A stretch of DNA of 64,000 nucleotides from Penicillus capitatus (Eukaryota; Plantae; Chlorophyta): NCBI GenBank assembly GCA_965649825.1, contig OZ287695.1:1097081-1161080 (forward strand). Direction: 5' to 3'. The position numbers were made by a program, and so were the translations under genes. This document shows positions 1-39,444 of the stretch, piece by piece. The notes under the pieces were generated by a model. It saw nothing but the letters and a program-made list of their open reading frames with translations. It was not told the DNA's origin and did no database searches. Each line of letters starts with the position of its first letter. The first letter of the stretch is position 1.

Positions 1-2691
1 GGACTGGATGAGAATGGAAGCGTTCCAAACTCCCTACAGATGGCAAACAGTCTTGTTTATACGAAACACGACCATTGCAAAGATTTCCTGGGAAACGCCG
101 TCAAGAATCACTCGATCTGCGCTGGATTCTCGAACGAGAATACATGCAAAGGTTTAATGCCTAATGCATTACTCTTCTGCCAAGCCATCTCTGTTGAAGG
201 TGATTCTGGTGGTCCGTTGTTGATTCCTTATGTGTTTGAAGGCAAATTAGCAGCTGGGAATCCAGAACACGACATGATTTTCGGCGTAACATCCATAGGG
301 TCCGAAGATTGCATCGATGATCCATCACCGACCATCTACACCAGTATCGGTGCATTCTGGGACTGGATTGAGGAAAGAATCGGCGAAGGTCCAAAGGTGA
401 TTAATCGGTTCTCCGAATTTTTTCCTCGTGTCTGATCGCCGAGAACATGAAAAGATCGACAGAATTCTGTTTAGTGACCTTCATCAGATAATGTACGTTC
501 TTCATAGGTGGACGATCCTGAAACTGACGATCCGTCAGTGAGCCCAGAAGAACAGGAACTTAGAGAAGAGCGCAAACGGCTGAGGGGACTCTCTCGGACA
601 GAACTGATTAAGGTTGGTTGGCAATAAAGAATGATGTGAAGGGACAGACAGTTCCATAGGAAGCGTATCGCTGCACAAAAAAGGATAGTGCATTGAAGTT
701 GGAAGCCGCTCTGCTGGAGGGACTCGAACCAGATTCTTTCTACGCGTCTTCCGTCTGGTCAGGATATTGGGAACGGAAGCGTTTTGCTCTGTTGCACTGG
801 TCGGCGTATTACAATGCGGAAAAATGCACTGAGGTAGTGTATTCTCTTGGCCTACTCTGGAACACAGAGTCTAGACGCTTCGGTTCTATCTATTGAATCT
901 CTGTGATTAAAGGTTCTTTTGGAATATGGCGCAAGCGTGGACAAGCGCGGCACATCCAGAACAACTCCTCTGCATGTGGCAGCGTGGACAGAACATGCGG
1001 TGGTGAAGGTAAACCAGAAAAGCGATCTTTAATCGTCCACTTCAACGTCTATTGTCAGATGCTGCTAGACGCAGGGGCCGATGTCGATGCGGTCGATGAC
1101 GATGGAAGAACTCCACTTCATGAAGCCGCTTACAACGAAAACCCCGAAGTTGTACAGGTGCATGTCGATTTGCCTTAGTTCTTATGTCCACGTTGTTGCT
1201 GGTTGCAGCTGCTGCTAGACGCAGGGGCCGATGTCGATGCGGTCGATAAATATGGAAACACTCCACTTCATGAAACCGCCTACAATGAAAACCCCGAAGT
1301 TGTACAGGTGCATGTCGATTTGCCTTAGTTCTTATGTCCACGTTGTTGCTGGTTGCAGCTGCTGCTAGACGCAGGGGCCGATGTCGATGCGGTCGATAAA
1401 TATGGAAACACTCCACTTCATGAAACCGCCTACAATGAAAACCCCGAAGTTGTACAGGTGCATGTCGATTTGCCTTAGTTCTTATGTCCACGTTGTTGCT
1501 GGTTGCAGCTGCTGCTAGACGCAGGGGCCGACGTCAATGCAGTCGATAAATATGGAACCACTCCACTTCATGAAGCCGCCTACAAAGAAAAACCCGAAGT
1601 TGTACAGGTGCATGTCGATTTGCCTTAGTTCTTATGTCCACGTTGTTGCTGGTTGCAGCTGCTGCTAGACGCAGGGGCCGATGTCGATGCGGTCGATAAA
1701 TATGGAAACACTCCACTTCATGAAGCCGCCTACAAAGAAAAACCCGAAGTTGTACAGGTGCATGTCGATTTGCCTTAGTTCTTATGTCCACGTTGTTGCT
1801 GGTTGCAGCTGCTGCTAGACGCAGGGGCCGATGTCGATGCGGTCAATAGAAAGGGAGAAACTCCACTTCATAAAGCCGCTTACTTCAACGAAAAACCCGA
1901 AGTTGTACAGGTGCATGTCGATTTGCCTTAGTTCTTATGTCCACGTTGTTGCTGGTTGCAGCTGCTGCTAGACGCAGGGGCCGACGTCAATGCAGTCGAT
2001 AAAAAGGGAGAAACTCCACTTCATGAAGCCGCCTGCAAAGAAAAACCCGAAGTTGTACAGGTGCATGTCGATTTGCCTTAGTTCTTATGTCCACGTTGTT
2101 GCTGGTTGCAGCTGCTGCTAGACGCAGGGGCCGATGTCGATGCGGTCAATAGAAAGGGAGAAACTCCACTTCATGAAGCCGCTTACTTCAAAGAAAAACC
2201 CGAAGTTGTACAGGTGCATGTCGATTTGCCTTAGTTCTTATGTCCACGTTGTTGCTGGTTGCAGCTGCTGCTAGACGCAGGGGCCGATGTCGATGCGGTC
2301 AATAGAAAGGGAGAAACTCCACTTCATAAAGCCGCTTACTTCAACGAAAAACCCGAAGTTGTACAGGTGCATGTCGATTTGCCTTAGTTCTTATGTCCAC
2401 GTTGTTGCTGGTTGCAGCTGCTGCTAGACGCAGGGGCCGATGTCGATGCGGTCGATAAATATGGAAACACCCCGCTTCACCGGGCAGCGATGTACGGTCG
2501 GTCAAAGACAGCAAAGGCGAGTCAGAGGTAGCATATTAATGTTCACGGTGCATTTCATATAGGTTCTCGTGAATGCCGGAGCATCGAAGACGGCAACTAA
2601 CAATGATGGAAAAACGCCTTTCGGCGTTATGTGTGATGGATACTGTTCCGATTCGACACGAATCTCTCTTAAGAAACTCTTGCGTCCATGA
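1..2691 (+). CDS. Trypsin-like (S1) serine protease fused to C-terminal ankyrin repeats; 5' partial
   Basis: Hand-spliced model join(<1..151,200..396,508..612,660..833,913..1008,1059..1157,1209..1307,1359..1457,1509..1607,1659..1757,1809..1910,1962..2060,2112..2213,2265..2366,2418..2516,2563..2691) is one open frame ending at TGA 2689-2691. Removing intron 152-199 restores the catalytic motif TCKGDSGGPL. Downstream exons read [25 protein letters not shown] (ankyrin consensus). The last intron (2517-2562) is GC-AG. Confidence 0.9.
1059..2516 (+). repeat. Tandem array of 150/153-bp units (99/102-nt ankyrin exon + identical 51-nt intron)
   Basis: Intron GTGCATGTCGATTTGCCTTAGTTCTTATGTCCACGTTGTTGCTGGTTGCAG starts at 1158, 1308, 1458, 1608, 1758, 1911, 2061, 2214 and 2367, identical in all nine copies by eye. 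Confidence 0.98.
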
Positions 2692-3581
2692 GCGGCCGTC
2701 CAACGCAACTCTCTTCTACTAAACACTCCACTAGGACAACTGTCTGACTTGTTTGTTAATTCCATTGTTACAGTGCCTTTTTTTTCGGACGAGCACCTGC
2801 TAAAAGTTTAAATCAGGTGAACGAGAAACCTAAACGGTTGATTTCCTATATGCACGAGGAAACAGGTCATTAGACCGTCGGTTGTGTTTGTTTTCGAATG
2901 TTGACTATTTGTGATGCTGTGCATCGCCTTGGAAATTTTGGGACCGAAACTGAAACGTCTGTAGCATTTGAACATCATCTGTTCTTTGACGACAATAGCG
3001 ACATTCTCACTCTTTCTTTCAATGAGTAACATCTCGTATCGGCGCACATTTATTCACCTTTGTTGTGGGAATGAGTTAGCGGCATGTATCCAGAGTTCAG
3101 AAATGTCTTCACTGTTGCTTTGACTGTAAAGTCTGAACTCCATTCATTTGGACTTGGTGATTATTTTAAGCAGCATCCGAATCTCTAGACATCTTTGCAG
3201 AGGAATGTATTTCGACATTACATTACATTAAGTGCATTCGTTACAAAATCGGTTTCATTGACAGAGAAAAACAACTGTGTTGAAAGAACAGCGCACACTG
3301 GTAGATCGGACTTCTTGAAGAAATTTCGACAATGGATCTGGGATTCTGACATTTCCCTCATTAGAGTAATCATAAGATGACCTTCTGCATCTGAGATGCC
3401 AGAAACCGAGATTCAACTCTTGCCCGATCGCCAAAGAACGACGAACAATTCCAACAGTTCCAGGCCTGTCTCATGAGTGACGACGTGCTTGTCAGACATT
3501 CTTTTGTGGAAGATCCAAGGCTGCTATTACGCTATGCAGCAGAGTGCGATCTTCTAGCTTTGTCCTTCGGTTAGATACCCC

Positions 3582-3790
3582 CTTCACCCGTTGAATCAGT
3601 CAGACATCTTTGTCCAAAGTGTAGATGTTTTCCTTCAGAAATGAGATGCGGCATAAGGCGGCCTTTGTCGTGCCTCGCGGCTACTAGATCCCTGTCCTGA
3701 GGAATAAATCCAGTAACACTTGGATGTGTGTGCATACATCCGCAGATGACCACATCGTCTGCTGGTTAGCCTTATGCCTTAAAGGGTGAA
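3582..3790 (+). ncRNA. Candidate structured RNA or element, family not recognised
   Basis: Nested stems: TTCACCC(3583-89)/GGGTGAA(3784-90); AGACATCT(3602-09)/AGATGTTT(3623-30); GGCATAAGGC(3650-59)/GCCTTATGCC(3769-78). The last encloses hairpins at 3668-82, 3722-41 and 3742-62. Non-Watson-Crick positions are G-U pairs on the + strand. Intergenic, with no credible ORF. Confidence 0.35.
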
Positions 3791-3975
3791 AGAGAAAGCG
3801 ATACATGCCAAACTCCAATTCTTCATCATGTGATCCAGCGGTTCAGAACAGCAGACAGATCATCATTGACGGCCAAATGGGCACTGCGTTGACGTGCTTC
3901 GAGAGGATGTCTAAGAGTATGTCATCGCGCAACGGACACAATCAAATCGTCCATCATCTTTAACAACGCAGTGTC

Positions 3976-5514
3976 TTATGATGCAATTCTCTCGGAACGC
4001 GAGAACAGAACGTCTACGACGCGACTGGTGTTGCCAAATGTCTCCAGAGCCGATAGATAGACCTTGTTCTCTTGAGGCGGATCGAAGAGCTCCAGACATC
4101 CCGTACCCTGATCCAACGTCCCCGTGATCATCTTGTCCAGAATCATCTACAACAAGACACCACCACTCTGCCTGCAACCGGATCCTCCCAACAACCGAGG
4201 ACGCACTTGCGACAGCTTCTTCTCGACGACGGCAGGATCCAGCTCTATGAGCTTCGCGATGTGACTAATCTCGACACGCGAGAAGGGCTCGATCAGTCGA
4301 CATAGGTTCTGTTGGAGCAGCGTGTCGTAGAGGATGGAGAGGTGGGAATTGACGACAGGATCTCCTCTCAGCTGCTCCTTGTACTGCTCCAGCGTCACCT
4401 GTAGAAGTTCCATCTCTCAGAGGCGATGGACTGGGAGAGGTGACAGTCACATCAAGCTGCTTGAGAGAGCGTTCCTGGTATGCGTGGGCCACAGCCTTCA
4501 TCGCATCGACCTCAAGCCCCACATACTTCAGTCCGGCCTTGGAGTTGACAATCGATGGGACGTCTGCTGCATCATTGGTCATGATCTTGCAGAGCAGCAT
4601 GTACTTCAGCTTGAATACCGCCTTGGGATCGTCCAGTGAACTGCACTGCTCGAACGCTTCGTAGAAGTAGGAGTAGGCCGTCTTGTAGTCGTGTTCCTCG
4701 GCGTGAAGCAGTCCTGATTGACTGTCTATCTGATAAGCCAGCGCGAAACTCGATGACACTATATCATCGACAGAACGCACCTACCTCTGCTTGCAAGGCA
4801 GGCGGGATGTAGACTGCATTGGCGGCTGTCCTTGCCGCGGTTAGAGCGGCACGGGAACGCGGAAGATTGCGCAGGGCGTGGTGTACACGGCTCTCGAGCA
4901 GATGGATGTCCACCAGGAGCAGTTTGTCGTCCAGTCTCTTCACCTCGCTTACCAACCTGCAGTACATTGGCCAGTCACTGTTATCTCGGCCAGTCGCATT
5001 GTGTCTCACGTCCCGATGAGCTGCAGGGCCGGTTGGAAGTCCTTTCCCTCCAGATACAGATTGGCCAAACGCGCCTCGATGCGTTGGCGCAGAAACGTTC
5101 TCTTCTCCTTCCTGGCCCACTCCACCTGCTCCTTGCACACCTCCATCTGCACGCAAGCCCACCCAGACGTGTCTTCGGTCGAGGAGCATGGGGATCAACT
5201 TGCAGGGCCACTGAGTCCGGCACTTTGGCGATGCTGTCGATGATGGAACGCACGATCTTGGCCGTTTTCGCCTTGGAGAAGGCGCCGAACTGCGGTCTGA
5301 GCTCGGTCAGGAAGGCCCTGAGCGCGACGGCGTCTTTGAGCCTGACATAGAGCTCCGCCACCTTGGCTATCGCCGTCTCCTTCGCCTTGATCGCATCCGC
5401 CGCCGTCGATGCGTCCTTCAGGATGAGCTCCTTGTACAGGCGGATCGCCTCCGGCGGCGTTCCCTCCTTTTCACCAATCTTTTCGAGACGGTCGTTGTAG
5501 TCGGCAGCTGCCAT
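3976..5514 (-). CDS. RPN6: 26S proteasome non-ATPase regulatory subunit RPN6/PSMD11 (multi-exon)
   Basis: N-terminus [13 protein letters not shown]; [16 protein letters not shown]; [24 protein letters not shown]; PCI-domain [26 protein letters not shown]; last exon [14 protein letters not shown]...ERIAS* (TAA 3976-3978). Confidence 0.96.
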
Positions 5515-5601
5515 GTCGGCTAAACAAACGCTTCGGACACTGACGTGACGTTCCGAATCCTGCTCTCGACGTCGACTTTCGTTCCCGCAGTCAACTCCGC
5601 C
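5515..5601. promoter_or_regulatory. Putative bidirectional promoter between RPN6 and LIMR
   Basis: Only 87 bp separates the two divergent ATGs (5514 and 5602). Promoter function is inferred from geometry only. Confidence 0.55.
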
Positions 5602-7314
5602 ATGGCCGAAGGCTTCAACTGGTTCCTCCTAATTATTGTCGCTGTCGTGACGGCACTTGTCTTCTGCGGCAACGCCTACATCGTCGTCTACCTCCAGCAC
5701 CCTGAAGACAAGAACCAGGCGTGGCTGCCGAAGTTCGTGGTGTGGATGGGACTCAGTCTGGCGACGCTCTCCGTGCTCATGTTCCCTCTGGACGTCGCCA
5801 ATCGCGGTGCCTGTGACGAGGAGTTGCCCCTCAGCTCCTGCGACTTGACCCTCCCCATGAGGGAGCTATGGTTCTCCGTCTACATCGCCAACGCCATCCT
5901 GGTGTTCCTCATGACCCCGTTTGCGATCTTCTACTACGAGGCTGGGTCGGACCGCACCCCAGGCCAGAGGCTCAGCGTGGCCGCTGCGTGGGTCTTAGCG
6001 ACCAGCGTCGTCATCGGGTTGATCCTGGGCATCGCCTACGCCATGGTCGGATACGTGGAGTTTCCGACAGCGAGGCTGACATCCGGCAGCATGAGTTTCG
6101 AGGATTTCTGGAACCAGGAGCACATCGATGCCTGTCTCTCTCCACTTTCGAACGCTTCGTCCCTCTCGTTTTCCGGAGATCAAGTGCGTCCTGCTTCTGA
6201 CGCGATGAACCTGTCACCATGATGTCTCCAGTGTGATGCTGAGAGGGGCGCCGTGGAAGAAGAGACGTGGAAAATAAGAACGACGTTTCCGTTGTACGCG
6301 GTGGCCGTGTTCTCGGCGGTGGGATGGTGGACGTTCCTCATCTTCGGCGGCATCGGACTGTCTTCTCTGCCAGTAGATCTCATCTCCGCCTTCTTCGCGC
6401 GTCCCACTGCCACCATCACCCGATCGGAGTACGTGCAGCAAGCGCGTTTCCTGGCGCAGCACGCACGAGAAATAAAGATCCTGGGAGAGGAGCTGAAGAA
6501 GGAGGAACGTGAGAGCGGACGCAGCCGCCGGTGGAAGCGAAACGTCAAAGAACTCAATAAACAGCTGCTCATTCTCGAAGACATGAACGAGGAACTCGAA
6601 TCCAAATATCCCCAGGTGCGCCAAACATCCTTTCCGTTCCGATCCTCATCTCGGTGCCCGTAAAGGGAGAGGACGGCGAGACACGTTGGGTGCTATACCA
6701 GCTGGGGTTCTTCTTGAGGCTTCTGCTCGGACTCCTGGGCGCGGCAGTCTCGGTCGTCTGGATCGTCCACATCGTCCTCTACCAACTTGTCTCTCCCCCG
6801 GCGACTTCGTTCCTCAACGACGTCTTCGTCGAGCTGGACGATTTCTTTCCACTCTTCGGCACTGCATCCTTCGCCTTCTTCTGTTTCTATCTCCTAGGTG
6901 ATGCGCACGGATGGCAATGCGATGACGTCGACTGAGAAACTGTGTGCGTGTGTAGCGTGCACGATCAAGGGCCACATGAAGCTAGGAATGAGTTTTGGCA
7001 TTCTGGATCTCTATCCCATTCGCCCGGGGGCGACGCTGATGAATTCCCTTCTCTTCAACACTGCTTTGATCCTACTGAGCTCGACAGCCGTGCTGCAGTT
7101 CTGCTCCGAGGCGTTCGCCGTCTACGCCAAGGACACGGACATTCAAGAGATCTTTGGAAATGACGTCGATCATCTTGTCGGCATCAAGTATCTCTACAGA
7201 AAGGACGTCTTCCTCTACTGCCTGCTGGGCTGTGCGGCACTCGGCGTCGTTCTTGTCATCGTCACGGGGCCAAAGAAGACGGCGCCAAAGAAGGGAGGCG
7301 TCTATGCATCGTGA
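5602..7314 (+). CDS. LMBR1/LIMR-family multi-pass membrane protein (plant type)
   Basis: MAEGFNWFLLIIVAVV..YLQHPEDKNQAWLPKFVV..LMFPLDVANR..PFAIFYYE; FGGIGLSSLPVDLISAF; coiled loop KRNVKELNKQLLILED; FPLFGTASFAFFC; YPIRPGATLMNSLLFN. GT-AG introns join the ORF pieces. Confidence 0.92.
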
Positions 7315-8434: not shown

Positions 8435-9339
8435 TCTTGGCGCCGCGGAAGCCTACTTGTTTCTCAAGTCATTTCCAAAGGTGAGAACAGAAGACGATAG
8501 AGAATGGGTATAACGCTTTCATGTACATGTTAATGCCGACAGTCCTCGTACAGGATAACCATGATTCTTTTGTCGTACATTCAAAACGTCAGACACCCGT
8601 GGATGAACAATAAACAACTAGGCGAAGTTCCGTGTACCGGGTATTACTTGACTAAACTGGTGTATTCTGGTCTGAGAATTCTCGGTACTTATTCGTGCAT
8701 GAATTTAGCTCATACAGTAAACACTCCTCGCAAGAATTTTCGCAATGCATGCGATGGAATGGTATCTGTTAAGTATGGATTGGAATGGGATGCCTAAAGT
8801 CGAACGGAGTAGGTTCGACGCATGCCGTTTTGTTTACAATACGTTTGTTTACATGCATCATCTCGCTTTGGCTTGAGCAACGCTTACTCTCCAAGCAGGT
8901 CTTCTCATGTTAGCTGTGTTCTGAACGTCATCGTCAAGCGTCTGTGCTGTCGGCGACAGCAGATGGATTATCCCTTTTTTCTTTAAGTGTTCTTCCGCTT
9001 TTGCGTCCTCCGACGCGTGTTGTTTCGTGTCCGTGTGGTTAAATGACTGCCCCGCAAAGACTTGCGTCCGCGAAACAGATCCAGCAATGCCACATATCGC
9101 GTACTGGCGAAGATCAAGTCAAGTGATGTCTTTCACACTGCAAGAGGCATCTGTATGTTCAGTGTCGGAAAATACTTACCAGAAACGCTCTGTTCCTTTA
9201 GAGAGTTCACGGAGAGTAATAAAGAGTGTCGACACTTTCGATGTGCATTCTTCCAAGTTCATACAGAATCTCGCTCTGCGCAAAACAAACTTGAATATGG
9301 ACGCAGGTGTTCGATACAGGCTCACGCTGCATCACATGG

Positions 9340-11661
9340 ATGGAGCAAACAACACCACGCGCTTTCAACGAACACGGCAGAGAGAATTCCTCAGCGAGTC
9401 ATCTATCGACAGCAAAATGCAAAGAAATCCGTACACCTCGAATACCCGCCACAGATTCGCATTATTTGACAGCCGTTAACATGTCTCAGCTGCTCTCCTG
9501 TAGACATTCGTCTCTGCAGCGGTACACGGTTGTCGCGACGACGCATGGCTTTGGCAAGAGAACTTCCGGCGTTGAGTGGCGTGGCATGTCTACCGTCGTC
9601 CAAAAGGCGCATCACCGCATCTCGACGAAGCAGACTGCGTCCGGCCCCTTTCGAAGCGAACTTGGAAAGCTGATAGACTGCTTTAGGCCAGCAATGAACG
9701 CAACAGGTGCTGCTGTCGCCGACGAGACAGCGACCAGAGGGGAAAGCCATCCATCCATTGACGAGTGAGCCATCCGCATGTGCTGATCGGTGCGAGTTGG
9801 CTAGATCCAGGCTACCGGCTTACGGGTCTCTTACATACTGTGGAAAGACAGCACTTGTGATCGGGGCCGGACCTGCAGGAATGGTGGCGGCACGCTATCT
9901 CGCAAGAGAAGGATTCACCGTCCAGGTTACATCTTAGTGTCGAGGTCTGTTGGCATGCAGATGAGGACTGCACTGAGCAGGTGTTTGAGAAACGAGACGA
10001 TCCGCGGGAGAATCCGTATTCTCGCACTCGAGCGAACATCATTGGCTTGCGACTAAACACCGTAGATGCCATGCGAGATGTCGGCATCGACCTTCCGGAA
10101 GAAGGTTTCAAATCCGGCGTCCACGCGCTACACGGTGCTACCTTTTCCCAAGCAACGAGGGACGGTGTTAAGTGTCTTGACGAAGTGCAGGCAGAGTTTG
10201 GTTTGGACAAGAGAACGTAACGATCGTGCCACCAGATTCTCTAGAGGGAGGCTATATTGGCGAAAGGCAAAGCATTGCCGAGCTGATTCTGATAGACACT
10301 CAAGAGAAATTCAAAGATCAGATCGCCCTCCGTTACAACCGCAGATGCAAGGTACGTGTTGCTTCTTCCCTCTTCCCTCTGATTTCGAGGTACTTCCTCA
10401 GAGAATCGACTTCGAGGCGAAGACTGCAGTTTTCGAAGATGCCCAGGGCGAAGATATCGCAATGAGATATGATCTGCTCGTCGGAGCCGACGGTTACAAC
10501 TCGGTCGTCCGACAGGAGATGGAGAAATTCGACGACTCCATAGTGATGAAGCAGTATCGCTGCAAAAGAGGGTACAAGTCGATTCGCAACCTTCCTCTCT
10601 TGGACGGAGGTACCCTTCATTAAACCTGCAACGCGACAAACACAATCGTATTTTTGCAGACGTGGTGTCCGAGTCTGTGAAGCCTGGATTCTTTTTGTTT
10701 GGGATACTGAACGGCAGATCTGTTGTGACGAAAGGAGTGGGTGGATCAACAGCGCTTATACTGTATCGATCAGAAGAAACTATGATGAACGGAACGCTTG
10801 CAACGAATCTGGCGACATTCGACACTATCCAAGGAAAGGAACATGAATGGCTCAGCGATGTCGTGCCTACCTACTTTCCGAAGGTATGTTCTCTTAAACA
10901 GTGTCCGCCGTGAGAGCTTGACCGGATTTCAGGAGTGGATCAAGGAGATCGGCGACCAGTTGAAGACGGCTCCCTTGACGAAAAATCCTGACGCCATTGT
11001 TGTGTCTAAGATGTACGGCCCCTCAACAGTTCTGCTGGGAGACGCTGCCCACGTTTTCAGTCCAAACCTGGGGATCGGGTTTGTTCCTAATCTACACCTG
11101 ACGCGAATATGACTCGATCTCTGTAGAGCCAATGCCGCCATTGTCGATGCAAAAGTCCTCGGCGATGCTCTTAAGGCGGCAGATGGAGACGTCGAAGCCG
11201 TGGGAAGGTCGTTTCATGATCAGCGATACGATGAAATGCATGCCTTTCAACAAGCGCAACTGGTCACTCCTCTTTCACTGATCGACATCGATGTCGGTGC
11301 TGTGGCGTAGGCTAACGCTTTTGAGCAGTATTTCTACTCGCCGGCAGATTTCGCTGACTATTTCGTCGGCTGGGTGTACAAAAATGTGACTCCGAATCTG
11401 CGACAGATGTTTCCAAAACTGATGTCAAAGACCTGCATCATCCGATACATGGAGAGAGAAATCAGCGCCACTCAAGCACTGTTCATTATCCGACGCGACG
11501 CCTGTCTTTTCGCAAGTAAACCCACCTCTGAAAGAGTCATTGCATTAATGTGTATGCATGTATTGTTGTTCCCAGTGGTCTGCACCGCATTCACACTGGT
11601 CGCGGTGAAGTTTCTGGCGATTCCCTTGATCGATTCCATCGCAGGCCAGTCGGGGATCTGA
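9340..11661 (+). CDS. FAD-dependent monooxygenase (group A flavoprotein, kynurenine 3-monooxygenase-like), copy 1
   Basis: Rossmann motif ALVIGAGPAG, DG motif YDLLVGADG, GD motif VLLGDAAHVFSPNLG..ANAAIVD, and a C-terminal hydrophobic helix. R/S-rich N-terminal extension. Start codon uncertain (9340 or 9482). Confidence 0.88.
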
Positions 11662-12027
11662 GTTCTCATTCCACGTTTCCTTTCCTTGTGGAAAACTTTC
11701 AACGGCTTTGTTACTTATACTCTTTTTTACAAGTTGCTGTGGAATCTCGCTCTTGGCAACTTTATTGCGGTCTCAAAGATAGCCATTTCTTGGTTCGATA
11801 ATAGTCGAGTGACTCTGAGCACAAGACCAGGTTTCAAAGCAGTCGATGGTTTCAAGGAAGACGACTGACAGAGTAGACAACTATTGTCGCCGTCGGGAAT
11901 GAAAGATCACAACTGCAGAAAACGTAACTTCTGCATGATACAGTCATCAATCTCATTTCGCTCTACGCAAAACAAACTCGAATATGGACGCAGGTGTTCG
12001 ATACAAGCTCGCGCTCCATCACATCAG

Positions 12028-14352
12028 ATGGCGCAAACAGCACCACGCGCTATCAACGAACACGGCAGAGAGAATTCCTCAGCGAGTCATCTGTCGAGGG
12101 CAAATTGCAAAGAGTACCGTACATCTCCAACGCCCACCATAGATTCGTGTTATTTGACATTAGTGAACGTGTCTCAGCTGCTCGCCTCCGGAATTTTGCC
12201 TTCTCGGCCGTGTTCGGTTTCTGCGATGATGCATGGCTTTGACAAGAAAGCTTCAAAGGCGGTCGAGCGGCGTGGCGTGTCTCCCGTCATCCAGAAAGCG
12301 CATCGCCGCATCTCGAGGAAGTACACTGCGTTCGGTCCTTTCTGAAGCAAACTTGGAGAGCTGACAGACTGCTTTAGGCCAGCGAAGAACGCAACAGGCG
12401 CCGTTGCTGACGAAACAGCGACCAGAAGGGAAAGCCATCCATCGACTGACGAGTAAGCCATCCGCATGTGTGATCGGTGCGAGCTGCCTGGATCCAGGCT
12501 ACCGGCTTACGGCTCTTACAGATACCGTGGAAAAACAGCACTTGTGATCGGGGCCGGACCTGCAGGAATGGTGGCGGCACGCTATCTCGCAAGAGAAGGA
12601 TTCACCGTCCAGGTCACACCTTTGCGTCGAGTGTGGCGGCATGCGGACAAGGACTGCACAGAGCAGGTGTCTGAGAAACGAGGCGATCCGCAGGAGAATC
12701 CTTATCCTCGAACCCGATCGAACCTCATTGGCTTGCGGCCCTGCACCGTAGATGCCATGCTAGATGTCGGCATCGACTTTCCGGAAGAGGGTTTCAAATC
12801 CGGCGTCCACGCGCTGCACGGTGCTACCTTTTCCCAAGAGACGGGAGACGGTGTTCAGTGTCTTGACCAAGTGCAGGCAACGTGGCGTTTGGACTGAAGA
12901 ACATAGAGACCATGCTGCCGGACTCGCCTAGAAGAACCTATATAGGCGAAAGGCAAAGCATTGCCGAGCTGATTCTGATAGACACTCAAGAGAAATTCAA
13001 AGATCAGATCGCCCTCCATTACAACCGCAGATGCAAGGTATGTGTTGCTTCTTCCCTCCTCTCTCTGATTTCGAGGTACTTCCTCAGAGAATCGACTTCG
13101 AGGCAAAAACTGCAGTTTTTGAAGAAGCCCAGGGTGAAGATATCGCAATCAGATATGATCTGCTTGTCGGAGCCGACGGCTACAACTCTGTCGTCCGACA
13201 GGAGATGAAAAGGCTCGACGACTCCATAGTGATGAAGCAGTATCGCTGTAAAAGAGGGTACAAGTCGATTCGAAACCTTCCTCTCTTGGACGGAGGTGGT
13301 TTCCACCAGACATGCGTACGCTAAAGGTGAATGCTGTTTTGTCCTGCAGATGCGATTTCCGAGTCTTTGAAACCTGGATTCGTTCTGTTTGGGAAACTGA
13401 TTGGCAGATCTCTTGTGACGAGAGGGGTGGGTGGAGCAACAGGGCTTCTACTGTATCGATCAGAATACAACATGATAAACGGTGCACTTGAAACGGATCT
13501 GGCGACACTCGACGCCATTGAAGGAAAGGAACATGAATGGCTCAGCGATGTCGTGCCTACCTACTTTCCGAAGGTATGTTCTCTTAAACAGTGCCTGCAG
13601 CAAAAGTTTGACTGTGTTTCAGGAGTGGATCAAGGAGATCGGCGACCAGTTGAAGACGGCTCCCCTGGGAAGAAATCCTGACGTCATTGTCGTGTCTAAG
13701 ATGGACGGTCCCTCAACAGTTCTACTGGGAGACGCTGCTCACACTTTCAGTCCAAACCTGGGGATCGGGTTTGTTCCTAATCTACACCTGACGCAAATAT
13801 GACTCGATCTCTGTAGAGCCAATGCCGCCATTGTCGATGCAAAAGTCCTCGGCGATGCTCTGAAGGCGACAGATGGAGACGTCGAAGCCGTGGGAAGGGC
13901 GTTTCATGGTCAGCGATACGATGAAATGCGTGCCCTTCAACAAGCTCAACTGGTCAGCCGTGTTCTCATCGATCGAAACCGATGTCGGTGTTGTGGCGTA
14001 GGCTAACGCTTTTGAGCAGTATTTCTACTCGCCGACAGATTTCTCTGACTATTTCGTCGGCTGGGTGTACAAAAATGTGTCTCTGAATCTGCGACAGATG
14101 ATTCCAAATCTGATGTCAAAGGATTTCGGCCTCCGATACATTGAAGGAGAAATCAGCTCCACTCAAGCATTGTTCATTGTCCGACGCGACGCCTGCGTCT
14201 TCGCAAGTAAACCTACCTTTGAAAGAATCTTTGCATTAATGTGTATGCATGTATTGTTGTTCCCAGTGGCCTGCACCGTAGTCGCGTTGGTCGCAGTGAA
14301 GTTTCTGGCGATTCCCCTGATTGAATTGACGGCAGGCCAATCGGGGATCTGA
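12028..14352 (+). CDS. FAD-dependent monooxygenase, tandem copy 2 (N-terminus disrupted; truncated gene or pseudogene)
   Basis: Colinear paralogue of copy 1 with the same motifs and intron positions. CGA>TGA at 12343-12345, and the first acceptor is CTAG in copy 1 (9801-9804) but CTGG here (12488-12491). Confidence 0.8.
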
Positions 14353-15483: not shown

Positions 15484-16376
15484 ATAGACGTGTTTTCCAG
15501 AACCTATACCCCCGAAAATTTTCGCCTTGTGGATGGAAACGGTAGCCGGATTGAGTCGATGTGACGTAATGATGGTCATTTACCGCCGGCTGCGTTTCGC
15601 CCGGCCATTCTGCGTCTCCGCGACAATCCTGGATTCGTTCCGTCAATCGGCAGGCAGGATCTGCGAGTCGAGTGGTAAGCCAGGCTGTGGCGCAAGGTTT
15701 TGACGATGCAGATTTTCAAGGGGCTAACGCTTTGACGAGAGGACGACCAAAGAACTGTAGGCCCATACAAACAAAAGCTCCAGACTGTTTGCATATTCAC
15801 TATAAATTGCACTGTTTACGTGGATCACTAAAAGTGTGTGGGCAGAGATGGCACCTTCTTCGCAACCATATATCCCAAGTCTCAGTCGCACGCGATGGCA
15901 TCACGCTCATTGCTCACATTGCCTGCCATATGAGTCCTTCTTATGGGATAGACATTACAGAAAAATTGCTAATGCCGTATGGCTCACTATATGCAGCACT
16001 CGCATTAATTGTACGGACGGGGATCACCACCAACTCTAAACTCTACTGATGTCGGGATTTTGTTCAGCCGGCCCATTCCTCGGCGCCATTGAAACTCGAT
16101 TGGCAACGAAACCGTTCTGTGTTTCTTTCAAATCAATCGGTCTTTCGTTGCGATCGTGATGCGAATGAGCTACGGAGGATTGAGGGGCTTATGGGCACAA
16201 CATGGAGCTTCTGTGGAGAAGAGAAACAGTTTCTCGGCACCGTGTTCTCTGCTACTAACATCTAAGAACAAAGCGCTGGCCTCTCCATGATATTTGTTTT
16301 GTACGGAATTGCTCAACTTGAACTCGCTCACCCTCTCTGTCGCGTGTACCCATCACAACGATGAATTGTTTCCTGA

Positions 16377-17065
16377 CGACGTCGCATCGGAAACTCTGCC
16401 CTCAATGGCCAATGACGGGACACGAATGTGACGCGTACTGTGTCCAGAAAACGATCGTCTGAGCTGGATGTGTTGTTCATCGTTCGTCCTTAAGTGCTCA
16501 ACTGCGGAAACGACGACCTAGGACTGCACTACCACTCATTTGACGTCCAAGAACAGAAGTTCAAGATTGAATGGGTCGGCTCAAAGAACAGGATAAGGCG
16601 GCAGAAGATAGACGTGCTCTTCTCAGGAAGCAAGAGGTTTGCATTCGATGCAATAGGGCGGCAGCGTAGTGTGTTGTTGCGAGTCCCACAGCGTGAATGG
16701 ACTCGGCCTGTCGAGGACATGGTGCAGGACTACGAAGTCAACAACGCCGACAAAGCGCATTTCTCGCGTCTTTTAAAGATGTTGACGACGCAGACCGTTT
16801 TTTGTGCGAAACCGTTCGTATGCGACGCCATGGTTTGGCAGCATGGAACAGTGGCGTCGCATCATCGCCACGGAAAGACTTCATCAATACGGAAGATGAG
16901 AACTCACTCCGACAACACACCACCTGTCCATCTAAATTTGCCAATTTGCTTCGCGACTGCACTTCAACGAACGATGACCACATCGTCGCAGAAACACGCT
17001 CATGCTGTGAGGAAAGGGTGCGTGTTTTTGCGAAGTTCTTCAAGATATCATAGGAACAGTCTTCT
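16377..17065 (+). pseudogene. Degenerate, internally deleted copy of the beta-propeller glycosidase-like gene at 25323-27012
   Basis: LNCGNDDLGLHYHSFDVQEQKFKIEWVGSKN matches LNCGNEDLRMYYHSFDAQEQKFKIGWAGSKN. The junction near 16466-16470 joins sequence matching 25549 directly to sequence matching 26306. Frameshifts follow. Confidence 0.88.
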
Positions 17066-17439
17066 GGTCACTGCCTTGAATGTGGCTTTAAGGCTTCAAT
17101 GTAGCTTCATGTTAATGACATGAGTAGCAGTTGTAGCTCTTGTTGAGGTATAAAGCCCGTTTCTTGAGCATCGCAGATGAGCGTCTCTTCTCTCTGAACT
17201 CCCTACCGATACACCAGTAATTTGACTCGACAATCAACCATCGCCGAACTTGTACGTGGAGGTTATTCTTGCTAACATCCCCGTAACGTTTTTCACGGTT
17301 TTTCCTGGATGTTAAAGAACACGAGGCAGCCAAGGAAGCGAGTGCGCTTCAGACATCGTCTGTTAGCTTTCTCGAGACGTTTGCAAGGAAGAACGTTTCC
17401 GCCCAAGACCTTACAGTGCAGCGTTCCGAATAGCGGTCG

Positions 17440-20400
17440 ATGAATTTACTGCAACGCACTCCTCTAAGGGTACTCAAAGGTCATCCGCAAATGCGTCTTG
17501 TGAACACTGGTGTAGGTTTTTGGGTTGCTATGCCTCTGCGCCTGCGTGAGTCATGCATACGTGCCAGTGATTTATCCCTCCATGATCGAGCAACATGGAT
17601 TCGTCTACCACGAGGTGTGTCTGTCTCATCGAAATGAAATTGCCATTCGATCTGTTCTCCTCTAGGATTCCAGAAGGGTGTTGAGTCTGCCCGGGGGAGT
17701 GGAACCGCTCCTGTGCAGACAGGGAGAAACGAATCCGTTCGATGAGGCAGACCGCGAATGCTCGGATGTTGTCGTTTTCACCAGTTCCGAGACCATCACC
17801 TTTCAGATTCTAAACCTGTCCACAAACGGCGTCATCCAGCCATTCACTTCCATACCTGACGTCAGCTGCGATGCAGAAACGGCTCTCATTCCAGCTGATA
17901 TGTTTAGGTGAAATTATCTGATGGCATAGATGATAAAATCGAAATGTTCGCTTATGGTTCGGCTGGCTTGCTAAGTACCGAGGCAACTCAACTGACAGTA
18001 AACAATTTCCTTGATGGCACTACAGAATCGACAGTTAAAAAGGCAGAGCAATCTAGATCTGTTTTTCGTGGGACACAGTTCATCTCAGAAGCATTAGAAT
18101 CTGCAATCAGTGAAGAAAGTGACATGGATAATAAGTTCGATCAGGAAGAAGAAACAGATGCGATAGAAGTAGATCCGTCAAAGACCACAGAGTCGCCGCA
18201 TTCCGTCCCCGCAGCAGATTCGGACCTCGAAGAGCTCGAGGATTTGCAGAGTGCAGAGGCGCCGCATTCCGTCCCCGCAGCAGATTCGGACCTCGAAGAG
18301 CTCGAGGATTTGCAGAGTGCAGAGGCGCCGCATTCCGTCCCCGCAGCAGATTCGGACCTCGAAGAGCTCGAGGATTTGCAGAGTGCAGAGGCGCCGCATT
18401 CCGTCCCCGCAGCAGATTCGGACCTCGAAGAGCTCGACGATTTGCAGAGTGCAGAGGCACCGCATTCCTTCCCTGCAGACGAGTCGGACATCGAAGAGCT
18501 CGACGATTTGCAGAATGCAGAGGCGCCGCATTCCTTCCCTGCAGACGAGTCGGACATCGAAGAGCTCGACGATTTGCAGAGTGCAGAGGCACCGCATTCC
18601 TTCCCTGCAGACGAGTCGGACGTCGAAGAGCTCGACGATTTGCAGAGTGCAGAGGCACCGCATTCCTTCCCTGCAGACGAGTCGGACGTCGAAGAGCTCG
18701 ACGATTTGCAGAGTGCAGAGGCACCGCATTCCTTCCCTGCAGACGAGTCGGACATCGAAGAGCTCGACGATTTGCAGAATGCAGAGGCGCCGCATTCCTT
18801 CCCTGCAGACGAGTCGGACATCGAAGAGCTCGACGATTTGCAGAGTGCAGAGGCACCGCATTCGTCCTCCGAAGCAGATCCGTCCGAAGGTGGAGAGGCG
18901 CTGCCATCAGATCTGGAGATGTTCCCGGATCTGGTAGAAGAGTTGGAAAACCCCGAAGCAGATCCGTCCGAAGGTGCAGAGGCGCTGCCATCAGATCTGG
19001 AGATCGTCCCGGATTTGGTGGAAGAGTTGGAAAACCCCGAAGCAAATCCGTCCGAAGGTGCAGAGGCGCTGCCATCAGATCTGGAGATCGTCCCGGATCT
19101 GGTGGAAGAGTTGGACAATAAGGAAGTCAGAGAGTCTGTTAGAGCCGAGGAAGAGGGGACAGAACCGCCCGATAGCGCTGAGGAAGAACAGGGAGAACCG
19201 TCTAAGATCAGCAGTGAAGACGAAGAACCATCATCTGAGAACAGCGGTGAAGACGAAGAACCATCATCCGAGAACAATCGTGAAGATGAAGAACAGCCGT
19301 CTGGTACTGCCAGAGGATCAATCGTCGCACAAGAAACAAATTCGACTACTGCCGGAGCAGACATTCAAGTGATACCCGCTGAATGTAATTTCCTGTTGTC
19401 TTTGTCTCGATCACTGAATGATTGATGTCTTTAGTGTTCTCTGAAGAAGAAGACTCGGCAGAAGATGACGATGAAGAAGAATCCCAGTCTTTGCGGAAGC
19501 TTTTGAGAGACCTCCCGGAAACAATCAAGACAACTGGACCTGATAGTGACGACATAAGTGTCATCGTCATCGAAGCGAACAGCACTGCCGATTTCCTTCA
19601 TCCAGATGGAACAATCAAAGAAGATCGCGTATTACTCATGGAGTTGCACGTGAGCAAGATCCCGTCAAACACACTGATTCCTGTAGCTGTGCAATTCGGA
19701 AGCAACGTCAGCCGCAACATCTTCGTTTATCGAGACGCGTCTCCAGTTACGGCAGAGATCAGTTTGGTCCGGAGTCCTGAAAGTCAATCAGACACTGGTA
19801 CTGACGAACATTTCCAGTATCGAGTGGATTTTTCAAACTACATTTTCAGCCCTCCAGATGGCGACGAGATGGATTGTTCAGATGTCCGAAATGCATTAGC
19901 AAAGTTCACGTCGCAGCACTTGACAAGTGGATCCGATCTGAAAGCCAATGACTTGCAATCTGTGAGGAATGCAGCGAGAGATCTGTCTGACTGCTTCTCG
20001 CAGCCATCATCTTCGGTTCCAGAAGAAGTCGTTCGAGTGACTGGTGTCTCGGCAGAGATTAACGGAACGCAAGATCTACAGCTGCAAAATCTCCGAAAAG
20101 GCGAAAGTCCGCAAACGTCTGTACTGATCTCCTTTGAAGCCAATGTGGAGAGGCGCACGAGGATGGAGATTAGCATTCACCCTCCGGCAGGCGTCGTTGA
20201 TCTTGCTGGACAGCCGATTGAGGAGCAATCGGAATCGTACAGGATTGAACGAAGAAATCGGGCGACACAAAGGTCAGTAGACCAAGCAGAGAGATATGGA
20301 ACTGCGTCCACAGTAATAGCCAGCACATCCGTGGCCACTTCTGTCGCAGTGTCCGTTGGAACATCTGTAGCCACCTCTGTGACAGGATCGACGCTTGCCA

Positions 20401-37612: not shown

Positions 37613-37844
37613 GACCGATCGACCGATCGATTGTCATCGCTCGATTTCTGGGACGCGTGCATCGACCGATCGATTGTCATCGCTCGATTTCGGGGACGCG
37701 TGCATCGACCGATCGATTGTCATCGCTCGATTTCTGGGACGCGTGCATCGACCGATCGATTGTCATCGCTCGATTTCTGGGACGCGTGCATCGACCGATC
37801 GATTGTCATCGCTCGATTTCGGGGACGCGTGCATCGACCGATCG
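37613..37844. repeat. Non-coding 43-bp minisatellite, 5 full units plus partials
   Basis: GACCGATCGATTGTCATCGCTCGATTTC(T/G)GGGACGCGTGCATC at 37621, 37664, 37707, 37750 and 37793. The single variable base runs T,G,T,T,G. Confidence 0.97.
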
Positions 37845-38898: not shown

Positions 38899-39444
38899 TC
38901 ACGCGTCCATTTCCGCCTCGACAGGCTCAGTACCGTCGAACCACCAATCCCAGTCGCAACGCGTATGAACGGCTTCCGTTTCGCTTTCGTCCACATAATC
39001 ATCAACCTCTCGTTTCGTCATCGAATTTTCCCAAAAGTCCCGACGTCGATCGTCTACGTCGCCATTCGATGACGTATCCGCCGCGAGCGTCTCTCTCGCC
39101 CGTTGACACAACGAACATCGCGCAATGGTATTTTTGACGTCGTTCTCCATTTTCTCCCAGAAATACCACCGTCTCAGTTCTTTCAGTACGGCCTTCTCTC
39201 CTCGGTGGCCGCAAAGATGATGCGTGTGCGCAACCAACATGAGACGGTCGTTGAGGGGAGGAACTTCTCGTCGTCCCCTGTTTGATACCCGGAATAGTCG
39301 ACCACACTGCAACACATGACGACTGGCTCTTTTGCGCACTCGGCTTTTTTCGGATTCCGACGCGTAAGGGCCATAACACTTCGTTGAAAGGTAGCGCAAA
39401 ACGGGCAGGTCAACCCAGACGTCTTTGGAAGCTTTGTTAGGCAT
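38899..39444 (-). CDS. Stand-alone Ty3/gypsy-type integrase zinc-binding (H2C2) domain protein with acidic tail
   Basis: DVWVDLPVLRYL..EKSRVRKRA..REVPP..HHLCGHRGEKAVLKELRRWYFWEKMENDVKNTIARCSLCQ fits the Integrase_H2C2 pattern. No DDE core, RT or LTR seen nearby. Confidence 0.8.
   Translation of the reverse strand: MPNKASKDVWVDLPVLRYLSTKCYGPYASESEKSRVRKRASRHVLQCGRLFRVSNRGRREVPPLNDRLMLVAHTHHLCGHRGEKAVLKELRRWYFWEKMENDVKNTIARCSLCQRARETLAADTSSNGDVDDRRRDFWENSMTKREVDDYVDESETEAVHTRCDWDWWFDGTEPVEAEMDA

Follow-up and report, generated by a model that had tools for sequence, protein, structure and literature searches.

Gene structure

The window analysed here, a stretch of 64,000 nucleotides from the green alga Penicillus capitatus, opens with the 3′ part of a gene that joins a trypsin-like serine protease to ankyrin repeats (1-2691; plus strand, as for every exon and intron described below). 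The 5′ end of the gene lies off the window; the part within it comprises 15 exons separated by phase-0 introns, ends at a TGA at 2689-2691 and, when spliced, forms a single open frame of 632 amino acids. In this product Pfam recognizes the C-terminal end of a Trypsin domain and 11 ankyrin stretches. Only the C-terminal part of the protease domain lies inside the window, and its Trypsin match scores 30 bits (E = 6e-7; cut-off 20.6). The ankyrin stretches are matched at E = 1e-132 (Ank_2) and E = 4e-117 (Ank), from the ankyrin families PF00023 and PF12796, and AnkR/B and DARPin chains from the PDB can be aligned to the array repeats. The window also encodes a GCP3-like protein, whose best named matches come from Ostreobium quekettii (44%) and Haematococcus (39%), in keeping with a green alga.

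Two related loci are compared throughout: L001, from an independently assembled relative in another sample with ~6.5% non-coding divergence, and L008, from a more distant relative, syntenic to positions 1-6678 of the window.

The C-terminal half exon of the S1 protease domain (1-396) carries the catalytic-serine motif GDSGGP at 199-216. The window supplies only this serine; the motifs for the histidine (TAAHC) and the aspartate (DIAVVKL) are seen in the L001 ortholog and in paralogs. In L001 they are encoded by upstream exons that also specify a signal-peptide-like N-terminus, MKLFCDSRCRLGFYFSLLLLLLFFHAAACQ, and PF00089 is found in 20 paralogs or orthologs. Judged by these motifs, the encoded protein is probably a secreted trypsin-like (S1) protease with a C-terminal ankyrin domain.

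Downstream of the protease, the spliced model continues with a charged linker exon (508-612; VDDPETDD...RTELIK), a region that is structurally different in L001, and with a linker or degenerate first ankyrin exon (660-833). A unique ankyrin exon follows at 913-1008, in the same repeat-to-exon register as the array and with orthologs in L001 and L008. The left border of the array is a unique 50-nt intron (1009-1058) that shares ~85% of its bases with the L001 ortholog, from which it differs by 7 mismatches plus gaps, and only 53% with the array intron. Beyond the array lies a last intron of 46 nt with GC-AG borders (2517-2562), the sole splice that keeps the ankyrin frame; it is 100% identical to the intron of L001-A, a partial paralog, and differs by 4 mismatches plus gaps from that of L001-B, and L008 also has a GC-AG intron at this site. 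The last exon (2563-2691) encodes a capping ankyrin half-repeat and the C-terminal tail.

Array architecture

Between these borders, TRF finds a tandem repeat with a period of 150 bp and 9.4 copies (1056-2479). As assembled, the window contains exactly nine copies of a 51-nt GT-AG intron, GTGCATGTCGATTTGCCTTAGTTCTTATGTCCACGTTGTTGCTGGTTGCAG, at 1158-1208, 1308-1358, 1458-1508, 1608-1658, 1758-1808, 1911-1961, 2061-2111, 2214-2264 and 2367-2417, with no further match at up to 3 mismatches in the 64 kb (chance expectation 0). Because the intron carries an in-frame TAG, it must be spliced out. The eight internal exons, from E1 (1209-1307) to E8 (2265-2366), are 99 or 102 nt long and in phase 0, and each encodes one ankyrin repeat of the pattern ...G.TPLH.....E.PEVVQ. 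An original prediction, made from the letters alone, had read the units as ankyrin repeats, one per exon, and the translations and Pfam agree with it. A minus-strand ORF at 1042-1491 was considered as a gene and rejected as a by-product of the repeat.

The exons fall into two main types. E1 has the A-type residues DKYGN, HET and NEN, and E2 (1359-1457) is identical to it, the two forming an exact repeat of 245 bp offset by 150. E3 (1509-1607) is an A-type unit with a GAC..AAT GCA patch (DVN, GT, KEK), and E4 (1659-1757) is likewise of A type (KEK). E5 (1809-1910) is a 102-nt B-type unit (NRKGE, HK, +F, NEK), and E7 (2112-2213) is a second 102-nt unit of this type (HE, +F, KEK); the B-type core strings are AATAGAAAGGGAGAA...TACTTCAAC. 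Between them, E6 (1962-2060) is a mosaic, combining an E3-type 5′ patch with a B-type hairpin tip, an A-type 3′ end and a Y-to-C change; the four-gamete test gives Rm of at least 1. E8 is identical to E5; the exact repeat of 252 bp that they form, offset by 456, is a three-unit higher-order duplication. At the edges, the first array exon, E0 (1059-1157), has a unique core beginning DDDGR, with its nucleotides 2-36 matching the array consensus, and the right border exon, E9 (2418-2516), follows the consensus for its first ~52-62 nt and is unique thereafter, its 3′ half having one mismatch against L001-A. Mean pairwise amino acid identity across E0-E8 is 83% (range 76-100%); within types, as read from the nucleotide distances and the repeat sequences, it is about 88-100% for A (E1-E4, 132 amino acids) and about 94-100% for B.

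Across E1-E8 there are 16 variable columns and one inserted TTC codon, all within codons 8-28 (33-codon numbering), leaving an invariant block of 87 bp per unit (15 + 51 + 21). Three columns are purely synonymous (GAT/GAC, GCG/GCA, GCC/GCT) and one is mixed (AAT/AAC/AAA). On recount, the nine introns, the 16 columns, the codon insertion and the 87-bp block given in the original prediction proved correct to the base, and the three synonymous columns and the lack of any intron variant were likewise reproduced; its list of residue variants stands as given, with HET/HEA as the sole omission. Under a uniform spread of the 17 variant states plus the indel over the 150-nt unit, the probability of all falling in the 63-nt core would be ~2-4e-7, or ~4e-4 when they are counted as ~9 independent blocks. 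The columns should not be taken as 16 separate changes: they resolve into the A-type/B-type split, a three-base patch and a few singletons. Since most of the variation in the window is this haplotype split and the 3-nt patch, few independent events underlie it.

Relatives and copy number

The array is carried by two genomes, those of the window and of L001. The L001 array has the same 51-nt intron in five copies, four exact and one with 2 mismatches, and different cores. In L008 the region spans ~530 bp, against 1428 bp in the window, and contains a single GTGCAT... intron, so that the module is present in nine, five and one copies in the window, L001 and L008, respectively. Because L001 has five copies with different cores and L008 only one, the array is real, lineage-specific and changing in unit number. 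Units cannot be paired between the two arrays: the distance matrix is star-like, every L001 unit being closest to the consensus-type E1, and unit-by-unit orthology (for example E8 with X4) is unsupported. With units of both genomes radiating from the consensus in this way, neither orthology nor the rates that depend on it can be assigned.

The gene belongs to a multigene family whose paralogs carry 2-8 repeats, and in the window as well as in 38 paralogous exons the repeat exons are 99 or 102 nt long with exclusively phase-0 introns. Alongside the L001 locus there is only a partial tandem paralog. One paralog (L002) has an NB-ARC-TPR gene nearby, which is a separate gene. The relatives were found with a protease-plus-linker query; a search with the full-length protein returned no relatives and was dominated by generic many-repeat ankyrin proteins at up to 47% identity. 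For Bryopsidales, the literature search yielded no relevant account of ankyrin or trypsin arrays. The orphan cassettes or further intron copies that had been envisaged did not turn up: the 64-kb window contains no orphan cassette and no extra intron or unit copy on either strand, and scans of JGI metagenomes with the intron and with a degenerate junction pattern gave no match.

Variation in exons and introns

The original prediction described an inversion of conservation, with introns more alike than exons, and this holds in both the window and the L001 array. In the window, non-synonymous variants affect 13 of 75 sites and synonymous core variants 4 of 13, against none of the 51 intron sites (p = 8e-4 and p = 1e-3, respectively). 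Within the cores, 13 of 50 non-synonymous sites vary, against none of the 36 sites in the exon ends. The L001 exons have 27 variant states over 99 nt, compared with 0-2 over the 51 nt of the intron (p = 6e-6 to 4e-4). These contrasts were assessed with Fisher tests, giving p = 1e-3 to 6e-6 across both arrays. Independent evolution of the nine intron copies since the divergence from L001 should have left 13-22 substitutions; 0 are observed.

In the array the ratio of non-synonymous to synonymous differences is 39:9; for this gene pair, exons outside the array give 67:39 (Fisher p = 0.026). The diversifying selection that had been proposed for the cores is not borne out by dN/dS, which is ~0.85 in the window and 1.1-1.4 when pooled, not significantly above 1. 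In the cores, synonymous sites vary as much as non-synonymous sites do, and protein-level selection alone explains this synonymous variability only via hitch-hiking under ongoing homogenisation. Throughout the gene, pS between the window and L001 is 0.21, against a divergence of 0.06-0.10 in introns and flanks, and because pS exceeds that divergence throughout, introns may be a conservative-looking neutral yardstick in this genome. The lower divergence of introns than of exons extends across the family: in its older paralogous arrays, intron p-distance (0.10-0.25) is below pN (0.21-0.38), which is in turn below pS (0.32-0.52).

Variable residues and the predicted binding face

Aligned by sequence to solved DARPin and ankyrin chains, the variable residues of the window lie at DARPin-register positions 1, 2, 3, 5, 10, 11, 13, the inserted codon (+1), 14, 16 and 31. 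Five of the six positions randomised in DARPins vary (p = 0.005), in accordance with the earlier proposal that the variable codons coincide with the predicted ankyrin binding face. The L001 array varies independently at the hairpin-tip and inner-helix positions 1, 5, 10, 11, 13, +1 and 14, and at further positions, yet not at 2 and 3.

DARPin libraries (PDB 5le2, 2xee) resemble the array in that repeat positions 2, 3, 5, 13 and 14 vary within a constant framework, and their modules align to the array repeats without gaps, the one-codon insertion excepted. The array differs in being natural, in having an invariant position 33 and a length change after position 13, and in varying beyond the DARPin set at positions 1, 10, 11, 16 and 31.

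Origin of the array and competing explanations

We infer an origin in the layout of the family itself, in which every ankyrin repeat is one phase-0 exon and homologous introns of ~50 nt lie between the exons. Unequal recombination between adjacent ankyrin exons that already resembled each other would have amplified, in tandem, a 150-bp module made up of the 3′ two-thirds of a repeat exon, the intron behind it and the 5′ third of the exon that follows. This amplification may be placed in the common lineage of the window alga and L001, after which the arrays would have reached different sizes (9 versus 5 introns, with 1 in the outgroup). Unit duplication and inter-unit recombination or gene conversion would then have turned over the units and kept the intron and the structural exon ends identical by concerted evolution, with substitutions and single-codon indels retained or accumulating only in the beta-hairpin tip and the inner helix, at residues of the target-binding groove. 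Selection would have favoured new or extended binding specificity of a domain that aims or anchors a secreted protease, and such selection is the most likely predicted meaning of the array. The full sequence of events, from unequal-crossover amplification through concerted evolution and core diversification to selection for binding specificity, strikes us as rather probable.

Recombination or conversion is visible in the mosaic unit E6, in the identical pairs E1/E2 and E5/E8 and in the segment of E9 and the last intron that matches another paralog. Direct signs of homogenisation come from the left edge of the array, where the first 35 nt of E0 match the array consensus. In the orthologous L001 exon X0 the 5′ part is still divergent and typical of the family, so the sequences indicate that the 5′ part of E0 was converted in the window lineage. 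With this overwritten end and the contrast between synonymous core sites and introns (p = 0.001), the homogenisation of the anchors that had been proposed is upheld, and the description of homogenised anchors plus diversified cores is supported. The same evidence bears on a simpler possibility, a very recent neutral tandem expansion in which the introns are merely young and the cores drift at tolerant surface positions. The identity of E1 with E2 and of E5 with E8, within exact repeats of 245-252 bp, indeed reflects very recent duplications; a core dN/dS of ~1 is what lack of constraint would produce; and the variable columns are those that vary family-wide. However, neutral drift cannot make exons change more than introns in the same young units, in the window or in L001, the A and B types are ~20% apart in the core and differ at 0 of 87 positions elsewhere, and the overwritten E0 end indicates active homogenisation, all of which makes neutral expansion quite improbable. 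An artefact of assembly or polishing is conceivable, because short reads are difficult to assemble and polish across exact repeats of ~250 bp within an array of 1.4 kb, but it seems extremely unlikely: the independent L001 assembly has the same architecture and the same intron, in the same register and with the same pattern of invariant introns and variable cores, and the frame and all splice sites are intact across 15 exons. The invariant segments might instead owe their identity to a function of their own, for example as a splicing or regulatory element or an RNA. In favour of this, the window and L001 have the same intron consensus at a locus whose other introns differ by 8-15% (probability of no difference, 0.007-0.06), and homologous GTGCAT... 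introns are 62-75% identical across old paralogs. Yet in older arrays of the family the intron copies have drifted apart without hindrance (p = 0.10-0.25), the consensus of many copies would be slow to change over a short period even if unconstrained, and one of the 2 changes in the altered L001 copy falls in the polypyrimidine/3′ splice-site region. A structured or known RNA was rejected: the intron folds no better than shuffled sequences (z = +1.45), and it has no Rfam match, nor is there an Rfam or tRNA match in the window. Intron function as the source of the pattern is therefore very unlikely.

It is also possible, if unlikely, that core diversity is mainly templated, through short ectopic conversion from trypsin-ankyrin paralogs or through retained ancestral segments within otherwise homogenised units, with or without later selection. 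Three linked changes, of which two are synonymous, make up the patch shared by E3 and E6; the string that contains it, GACGTCAATGCA, is identical at 24 of 24 bases to a paralog (L003, 11995-12018), and L008 shows two of the three patch states to be ancestral. Given the 24/24 identity, the patch would be either templated or ancestral. Moreover, multi-nucleotide changes are clustered in codons (TAT>AAG, AAC>GAA, GGG>GAA, AAT>AGC), E9 and the last intron are common to another paralog, and derived states coincide with the commonest alternative paralog state in 23 of 40 cases (p = 0.0014), an enrichment confounded by transition bias and shared structural constraints. Part of the diversity may accordingly be imported, rather than stemming from selected point mutations. 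On the other side, the nine loci compared offer only 12-27-nt matches as donors for the B-type, E0 and E6 cores and no donor for the L001 cores, and neutral conversion tracts would have no reason to end before the intron. A further idea concerns use rather than origin: the nine identical splice modules could generate diversity within the organism, by combinatorial exon skipping or by frequent mitotic unequal recombination among the many nuclei of the coenocyte. If true, one gene would give rise to a repertoire of secreted proteases with different ankyrin aiming domains, an adaptive-like recognition in a green alga, but we regard this as a long shot.

Comparison with known repeat systems

The closest parallels to the array come from fungal NOD-like receptors, whose ANK, TPR and WD repeat domains are highly internally conserved (Paoletti 2007; Dyrka et al. 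2014, PMC4986451). In both systems near-identical tandem repeats lie within one gene and differ in number between relatives, concerted evolution proceeds by repeat reshuffling in a fast-evolving multigene family, and variability is limited to a few positions of the concave face (for ankyrins, the inner helix and beta-hairpin). Fungal repeats differ in lacking an intron per repeat and in their NACHT/NB-ARC plus death or effector domains in cytoplasmic proteins, whereas the array gene has an N-terminal trypsin-like protease and a signal peptide in its ortholog, with no NOD domain detected by Pfam. In Podospora repeats positive selection is statistically established; in the array the variable positions map to the hairpin and inner helix in the same way, and omega is ~1.1-1.4, not significantly above 1. 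Against the fungal criterion of at least about 85% repeat identity over at least 100 amino acids, the array averages 83%, with the types higher. Such highly conserved repeats are rare in Viridiplantae, at 0.4% (Dyrka et al. 2014, PMC4986451).

Brown algae provide a second parallel in their ROCO-LRR and NB-ARC-TPR genes, which have one repeat per exon and for which alternative splicing has been reported (Zambounis et al. 2012, PMC3341825; Teng et al. 2024, PMC11378527). These algal genes likewise place each repeat on a symmetrical phase-0 exon of constant length, duplicate exons in tandem, vary in repeat number among paralogs and have hypervariable residues on the ligand-binding face. They are built on LRR or TPR rather than ankyrin repeats, belong to brown rather than green algae and carry ROC-COR or NB-ARC rather than S1 protease domains. 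Neither ROC-COR nor NB-ARC is found by Pfam in the array protein, the trypsin-like protease being the only partner domain, and the 64-kb window lacks the inactivated, antisense or intronic orphan repeat exons of the brown-algal genes; E9 and the last intron are the only places where exchange between paralogs shows. The analogy to Ectocarpus that had been drawn thus holds for the exon-per-repeat layout in phase 0 and the variable unit number, and fails for the partner domain, which is a protease.

Lamprey VLRs start from an incomplete germline gene and banks of donor cassettes; here, by contrast, the gene has a complete, in-frame 3′ end, and the 61 kb downstream of it in the window contain no cassette bank. 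The one-repeat-per-exon layout with 99-nt exons also has a counterpart in the vertebrate genes ANK1-3, in which many repeats are encoded by single 99-bp exons. Their repeats and introns are old and diverged, however, and show neither near-identity nor recent copy-number change nor the pattern of hypervariable positions. Exon evolution that is accelerated relative to introns is known from snake venom PLA2 and serine protease families, where it is read as diversifying selection. Venom-gland isozymes are similar in that introns and non-coding sequence are more conserved than coding sequence among recent duplicates; they differ in being whole-gene duplicates with dN/dS clearly above 1, whereas the array consists of intragenic units.

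Biological significance

Near-identical tandem repeats that differ only at a few binding-face residues mark recognition proteins under rapid diversification, as candidate immune receptors of fungi and brown algae already illustrate. What is new here is the same regime in a chlorophyte, built on ankyrins with an intron per repeat and coupled to a probably secreted trypsin-like protease in place of a NOD or GTPase module; a putative recognition repertoire is a plausible reading of it. Copy numbers of 1, 5 and 9 in three related genomes offer a clean, datable natural experiment on the birth, homogenisation and diversification of an array, with the built-in introns as an internal near-neutral yardstick. 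If it is true that the ankyrin domain aims the protease at microbes, wound debris or non-self, these genes would represent a new class of algal defence or self-recognition.

Architecture of the host gene

Removal of introns at the obvious GT-AG sites, and of one GC-AG intron at 2517-2562, leaves the window gene with one uninterrupted frame that runs from base 1 as far as the TGA stop codon (2689-2691). In order, it encodes the C-terminal half of a trypsin-like S1 protease, with GDSGGP at 199-216, then a charged linker and two unique ankyrin exons, followed by the array exons E0-E9 (1059-2516) and a capping exon; introns are phase 0 throughout, and Pfam recognizes 11 Ank stretches as well as the C-terminal end of Trypsin. 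In L001, a close relative, upstream exons encode a signal-peptide-like N-terminus, TAAHC and DIAVVKL, which predict a secreted S1 protease that is catalytically complete. Just 5' of GDSGGP (window 150-200; L001 10090-10140), the two peptides differ, L001 reading LMPNSITLPPAFSAE, with compensating DNA indels that may represent a frameshift patch or a tiny intron (33-nt GT..AG candidate at ~151-183).

The 51-nt array intron, GTGCATGTCGATTTGCCTTAGTTCTTATGTCCACGTTGTTGCTGGTTGCAG, has exactly nine copies (starts 1158, 1308, 1458, 1608, 1758, 1911, 2061, 2214 and 2367) and none elsewhere in the 64-kb window with up to 3 mismatches; it must be spliced out because it contains an in-frame TAG. TRF reports a 150-bp period in 9.4 copies (1056-2479). 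Each of the eight internal exons (E1-E8; 99 or 102 nt) carries one ankyrin repeat with the pattern LLLDAGADV(D/N)AV...G.TPLH.....E.PEVVQ. Their 16 variable columns (three purely synonymous, a fourth mixed) and one TTC codon insertion all fall within codons 8-28, outside an invariant 87-bp block that consists of the intron, the 5 codons ending the exon before it and the 7 codons opening the next, exactly as the original prediction had described them base by base. Confinement of all variants to the 63-nt core has p ~4e-7 if they are placed uniformly, and ~4e-4 with a conservative ~9 independent blocks. The columns are non-independent events: exons E1-E4 are of an A type and E5, E7 and E8 of a B type, which differs from it by 12-14 changes plus an extra codon; the rest are a patch of three linked changes in E3 and E6 and 4-5 singletons.

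Relatives and the origin of the array

A search with the protease and linker as query retrieved 20 relatives, all of them ENA-only. L001, from another sample, diverges from the window by 6.5% in non-coding and 9.2% in exon sequence and has a collinear 3' flank. Its array shares the identical intron type in five copies only (four exact, one carrying two mismatches); the L001 cores (HDAVDNKN, HEAARLSSN, GDTPIHDAATHNEN, NKYKDTPLHKVALYNEN) are unlike those of the window. The more distant L008 (1.67-Mb contig, ~83-85% DNA identity) is syntenic with window 1-6678; its array interval spans ~530 bp versus 1428 bp in the window, with a single GTGCAT... intron flanked by an ordinary ankyrin exon and the E9 ortholog. 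This comparison identifies the array as a lineage-specific amplification, caught at 1, 5 and 9 copies in L008, L001 and the window. An assembly artefact is ruled out by L001, which has the intron in common in a separate sample. The trypsin-ANK paralogs L002-L007 have one ankyrin repeat per phase-0 exon, 2-8 repeats per gene, and homologous introns of ~48-52 nt. Synteny is broken among relatives (L008, L009): blocks 1-6678 and 35510-57850, <30 kb apart in the window, have counterparts on the ENA contig ERZ26696514:ctg303811, at 196-216 kb and 545-568 kb, with ~350 kb separating them.

The array begins at base 2 of E0 and ends near base 52-62 of E9. The L001 exon orthologous to E0 has a divergent, family-typical 5' part (VLLKQGVKV; cf. 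ALLKQEAKV in L002), whereas that of window E0 equals the array consensus without a difference. From this contrast, we infer that the unit was born by unequal recombination between two adjacent exons sharing a 12-residue stretch. The window lineage afterwards overwrote the E0 5' end with array consensus, and this overwritten end is a direct trace of the anchor homogenization that had been predicted. Furthermore, a four-gamete test (Rm at least 1) marks E6 as a mosaic, and the exact repeats E1=E2 (245 bp, shift 150) and E5=E8 (252 bp, shift 456) are recent one-unit and three-unit duplications, respectively. The GC-AG last intron (46/46 bases) and the 3' half of E9 (1 mismatch) match the partial upstream tandem paralog in L001 rather than the collinear gene (window 2470-2562; L001 7693-7837), which points to exchange between tandem paralogs. 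Within L001, 6368-8310 and 11780-12400 represent a tandem segmental duplication of the gene's 3' end with its 3' flank; the upstream copy holds ankyrin exons only and adjoins a retroelement integrase fragment (6368-6802).

Inverted conservation and its possible causes

In the window array, variant sites amount to 13/75 non-synonymous sites across the whole exon and 4/13 synonymous sites in the core (Fisher p versus intron 8e-4 and 1e-3, respectively), with 0/11 synonymous sites at exon ends and 0/51 in the intron. The L001 array holds 27 variant states over the 99 nt of its exons versus 0-2 over the 51 nt of its intron (p = 6e-6 to 4e-4), so that the expectation of introns steadier than exons is borne out in both. 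The nine window introns show 0 substitutions, versus 13-22 expected under independent evolution since the L001 split. In older family arrays (intron p = 0.10-0.25, pN = 0.21-0.38, pS = 0.32-0.52), introns are also more alike than exons, and this regime is thus family-wide in trypsin-ANK genes. Between the window gene and L001, whole-gene pS (~0.21) is well over the divergence of introns and the 3' flank (0.06-0.10), which would mean either constraint on short introns and flanks in this genome or a higher mutation or recombination rate in exons.

In two independent arrays the cores changed faster than their attached introns, which is at odds with a simple, recent neutral expansion followed by drift. 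Retention of the intron as a functional element is argued against by the older arrays, in which it is free to diverge, and by the lack of an RNA structure signal (z = +1.45) or Rfam match. Homogenized anchors with diversified cores are supported, while diversifying selection, the proposed cause, is formally unproven because dN/dS is ~1 and independent events are few. Within the cores, the omega-like ratio reaches 0.85 for the window and 1.1-1.4 when pooled, not significantly >1. The N:S ratio is 39:9 in the array versus 67:39 in other exons of the window/L001 gene pair (p = 0.026).

Synonymous core variants all sit only a few bases from an amino-acid change that segregates with them. Selection retaining unit-specific residues amid ongoing homogenization would therefore raise synonymous core variation to the elevated level seen; importing diverged sequence from a template would have the same effect. 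Import has some support: the E3/E6 patch, two of whose three changes are synonymous, equals a paralog string at 24/24 bases and is partly ancestral in L008, many changes are multi-nucleotide within one codon, and derived states are the commonest alternative paralog state in 23/40, in a confounded test. However, the B-type core is without a donor among the fetched loci. We favor, with moderate confidence, homogenized anchors combined with diversified binding-surface cores.

Position of variable residues on the ankyrin fold

Repeat register was set by alignment to DARPin chains such as 5le2, in which positions 2, 3, 5, 13, 14 and 33 distinguish the three internal modules. Window repeats vary at positions 1, 2, 3, 5, 10, 11, 13, 14, 16 and 31, with an insertion after 13, and include five of the six DARPin-randomized positions (hypergeometric p = 0.005). 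L001 shows independent variation in this hairpin-tip and inner-helix region, at positions 1, 4, 5, 8, 10, 11, 12, 13, (+1), 14 and 15, and further at 18, 20 and 27; positions 2 and 3 do not vary, and three independent one-codon insertions occur where the window has its own. The beta-hairpin tip and inner helix form the concave ankyrin binding groove, on which, judging from the register, the variable residues probably cluster, in line with the DARPin-like surface originally proposed.

Other features of the window

The green-algal source is corroborated by a GCP3-like exon, whose best named matches are Ostreobium quekettii (44%) and Haematococcus (39%). Three long acidic repeat tracts run in tandem and in frame within ORF 17908-19425 (66 bp x 10.2 at 18188-18863, 84 bp x 2.9 at 18869-19115, 33 bp x 2.8 at 19201-19294). 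Next to it, ORF 19422-20921 is clearly paralogous to 28116-29738, and both terminate in hydrophobic, membrane-like segments. ORF regions 9027-9768 and 11884-12345 have near-identical peptide stretches in common (…QNKLEYGRRCSIQA…SHLS.A.CKE.RT…), a likeness pointing to a dispersed repeat or the relic of a transposon. An apparently non-coding 43-bp tandem repeat (5.3 copies, 98% identity) occupies 37618-37844, and an integrase-like ORF lies on the minus strand at 38899-39714.

Comparison with known repeat systems

In fungal NLRs, highly conserved repeats evolve in concert, are polymorphic in number and show positive selection at positions of the binding face; among repeat proteins of Viridiplantae, only 0.4% have such repeats (PMC4986451). 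In architecture, the ROCO-LRR and NB-ARC-TPR genes of Ectocarpus and brown algae come closest: each phase-0 exon holds one repeat, exons are shuffled, selection is diversifying, and repeat exons are alternatively spliced (PMC3341825; PMC11378527). The suggested Ectocarpus analogy holds for the one-repeat-per-phase-0-exon layout; no orphan or antisense cassettes were found on either strand of the 64-kb window or in JGI metagenomes. The protease-ankyrin locus has regime and architecture in common with the fungal and brown-algal genes and belongs to neither family; unlike them, it lacks NOD and ROC-COR domains and pairs its array with a trypsin-like protease bearing a predicted signal peptide. 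L002, from a green-algal relative, contains an NLR-like intronless ORF (16336-20669, >1576 aa; NB-ARC and TPR_12) in which a 129-bp TPR unit is repeated in tandem (8.4 copies, 77% matches), ~6 kb downstream of its trypsin-ANK paralog.

We hypothesize that the array may constitute a modular recognition repertoire. The copy series of 1, 5 and 9, with its built-in intron yardsticks, is attractive for studying the birth and homogenization of repeat arrays, and the protease-ankyrin family is worth functional study.
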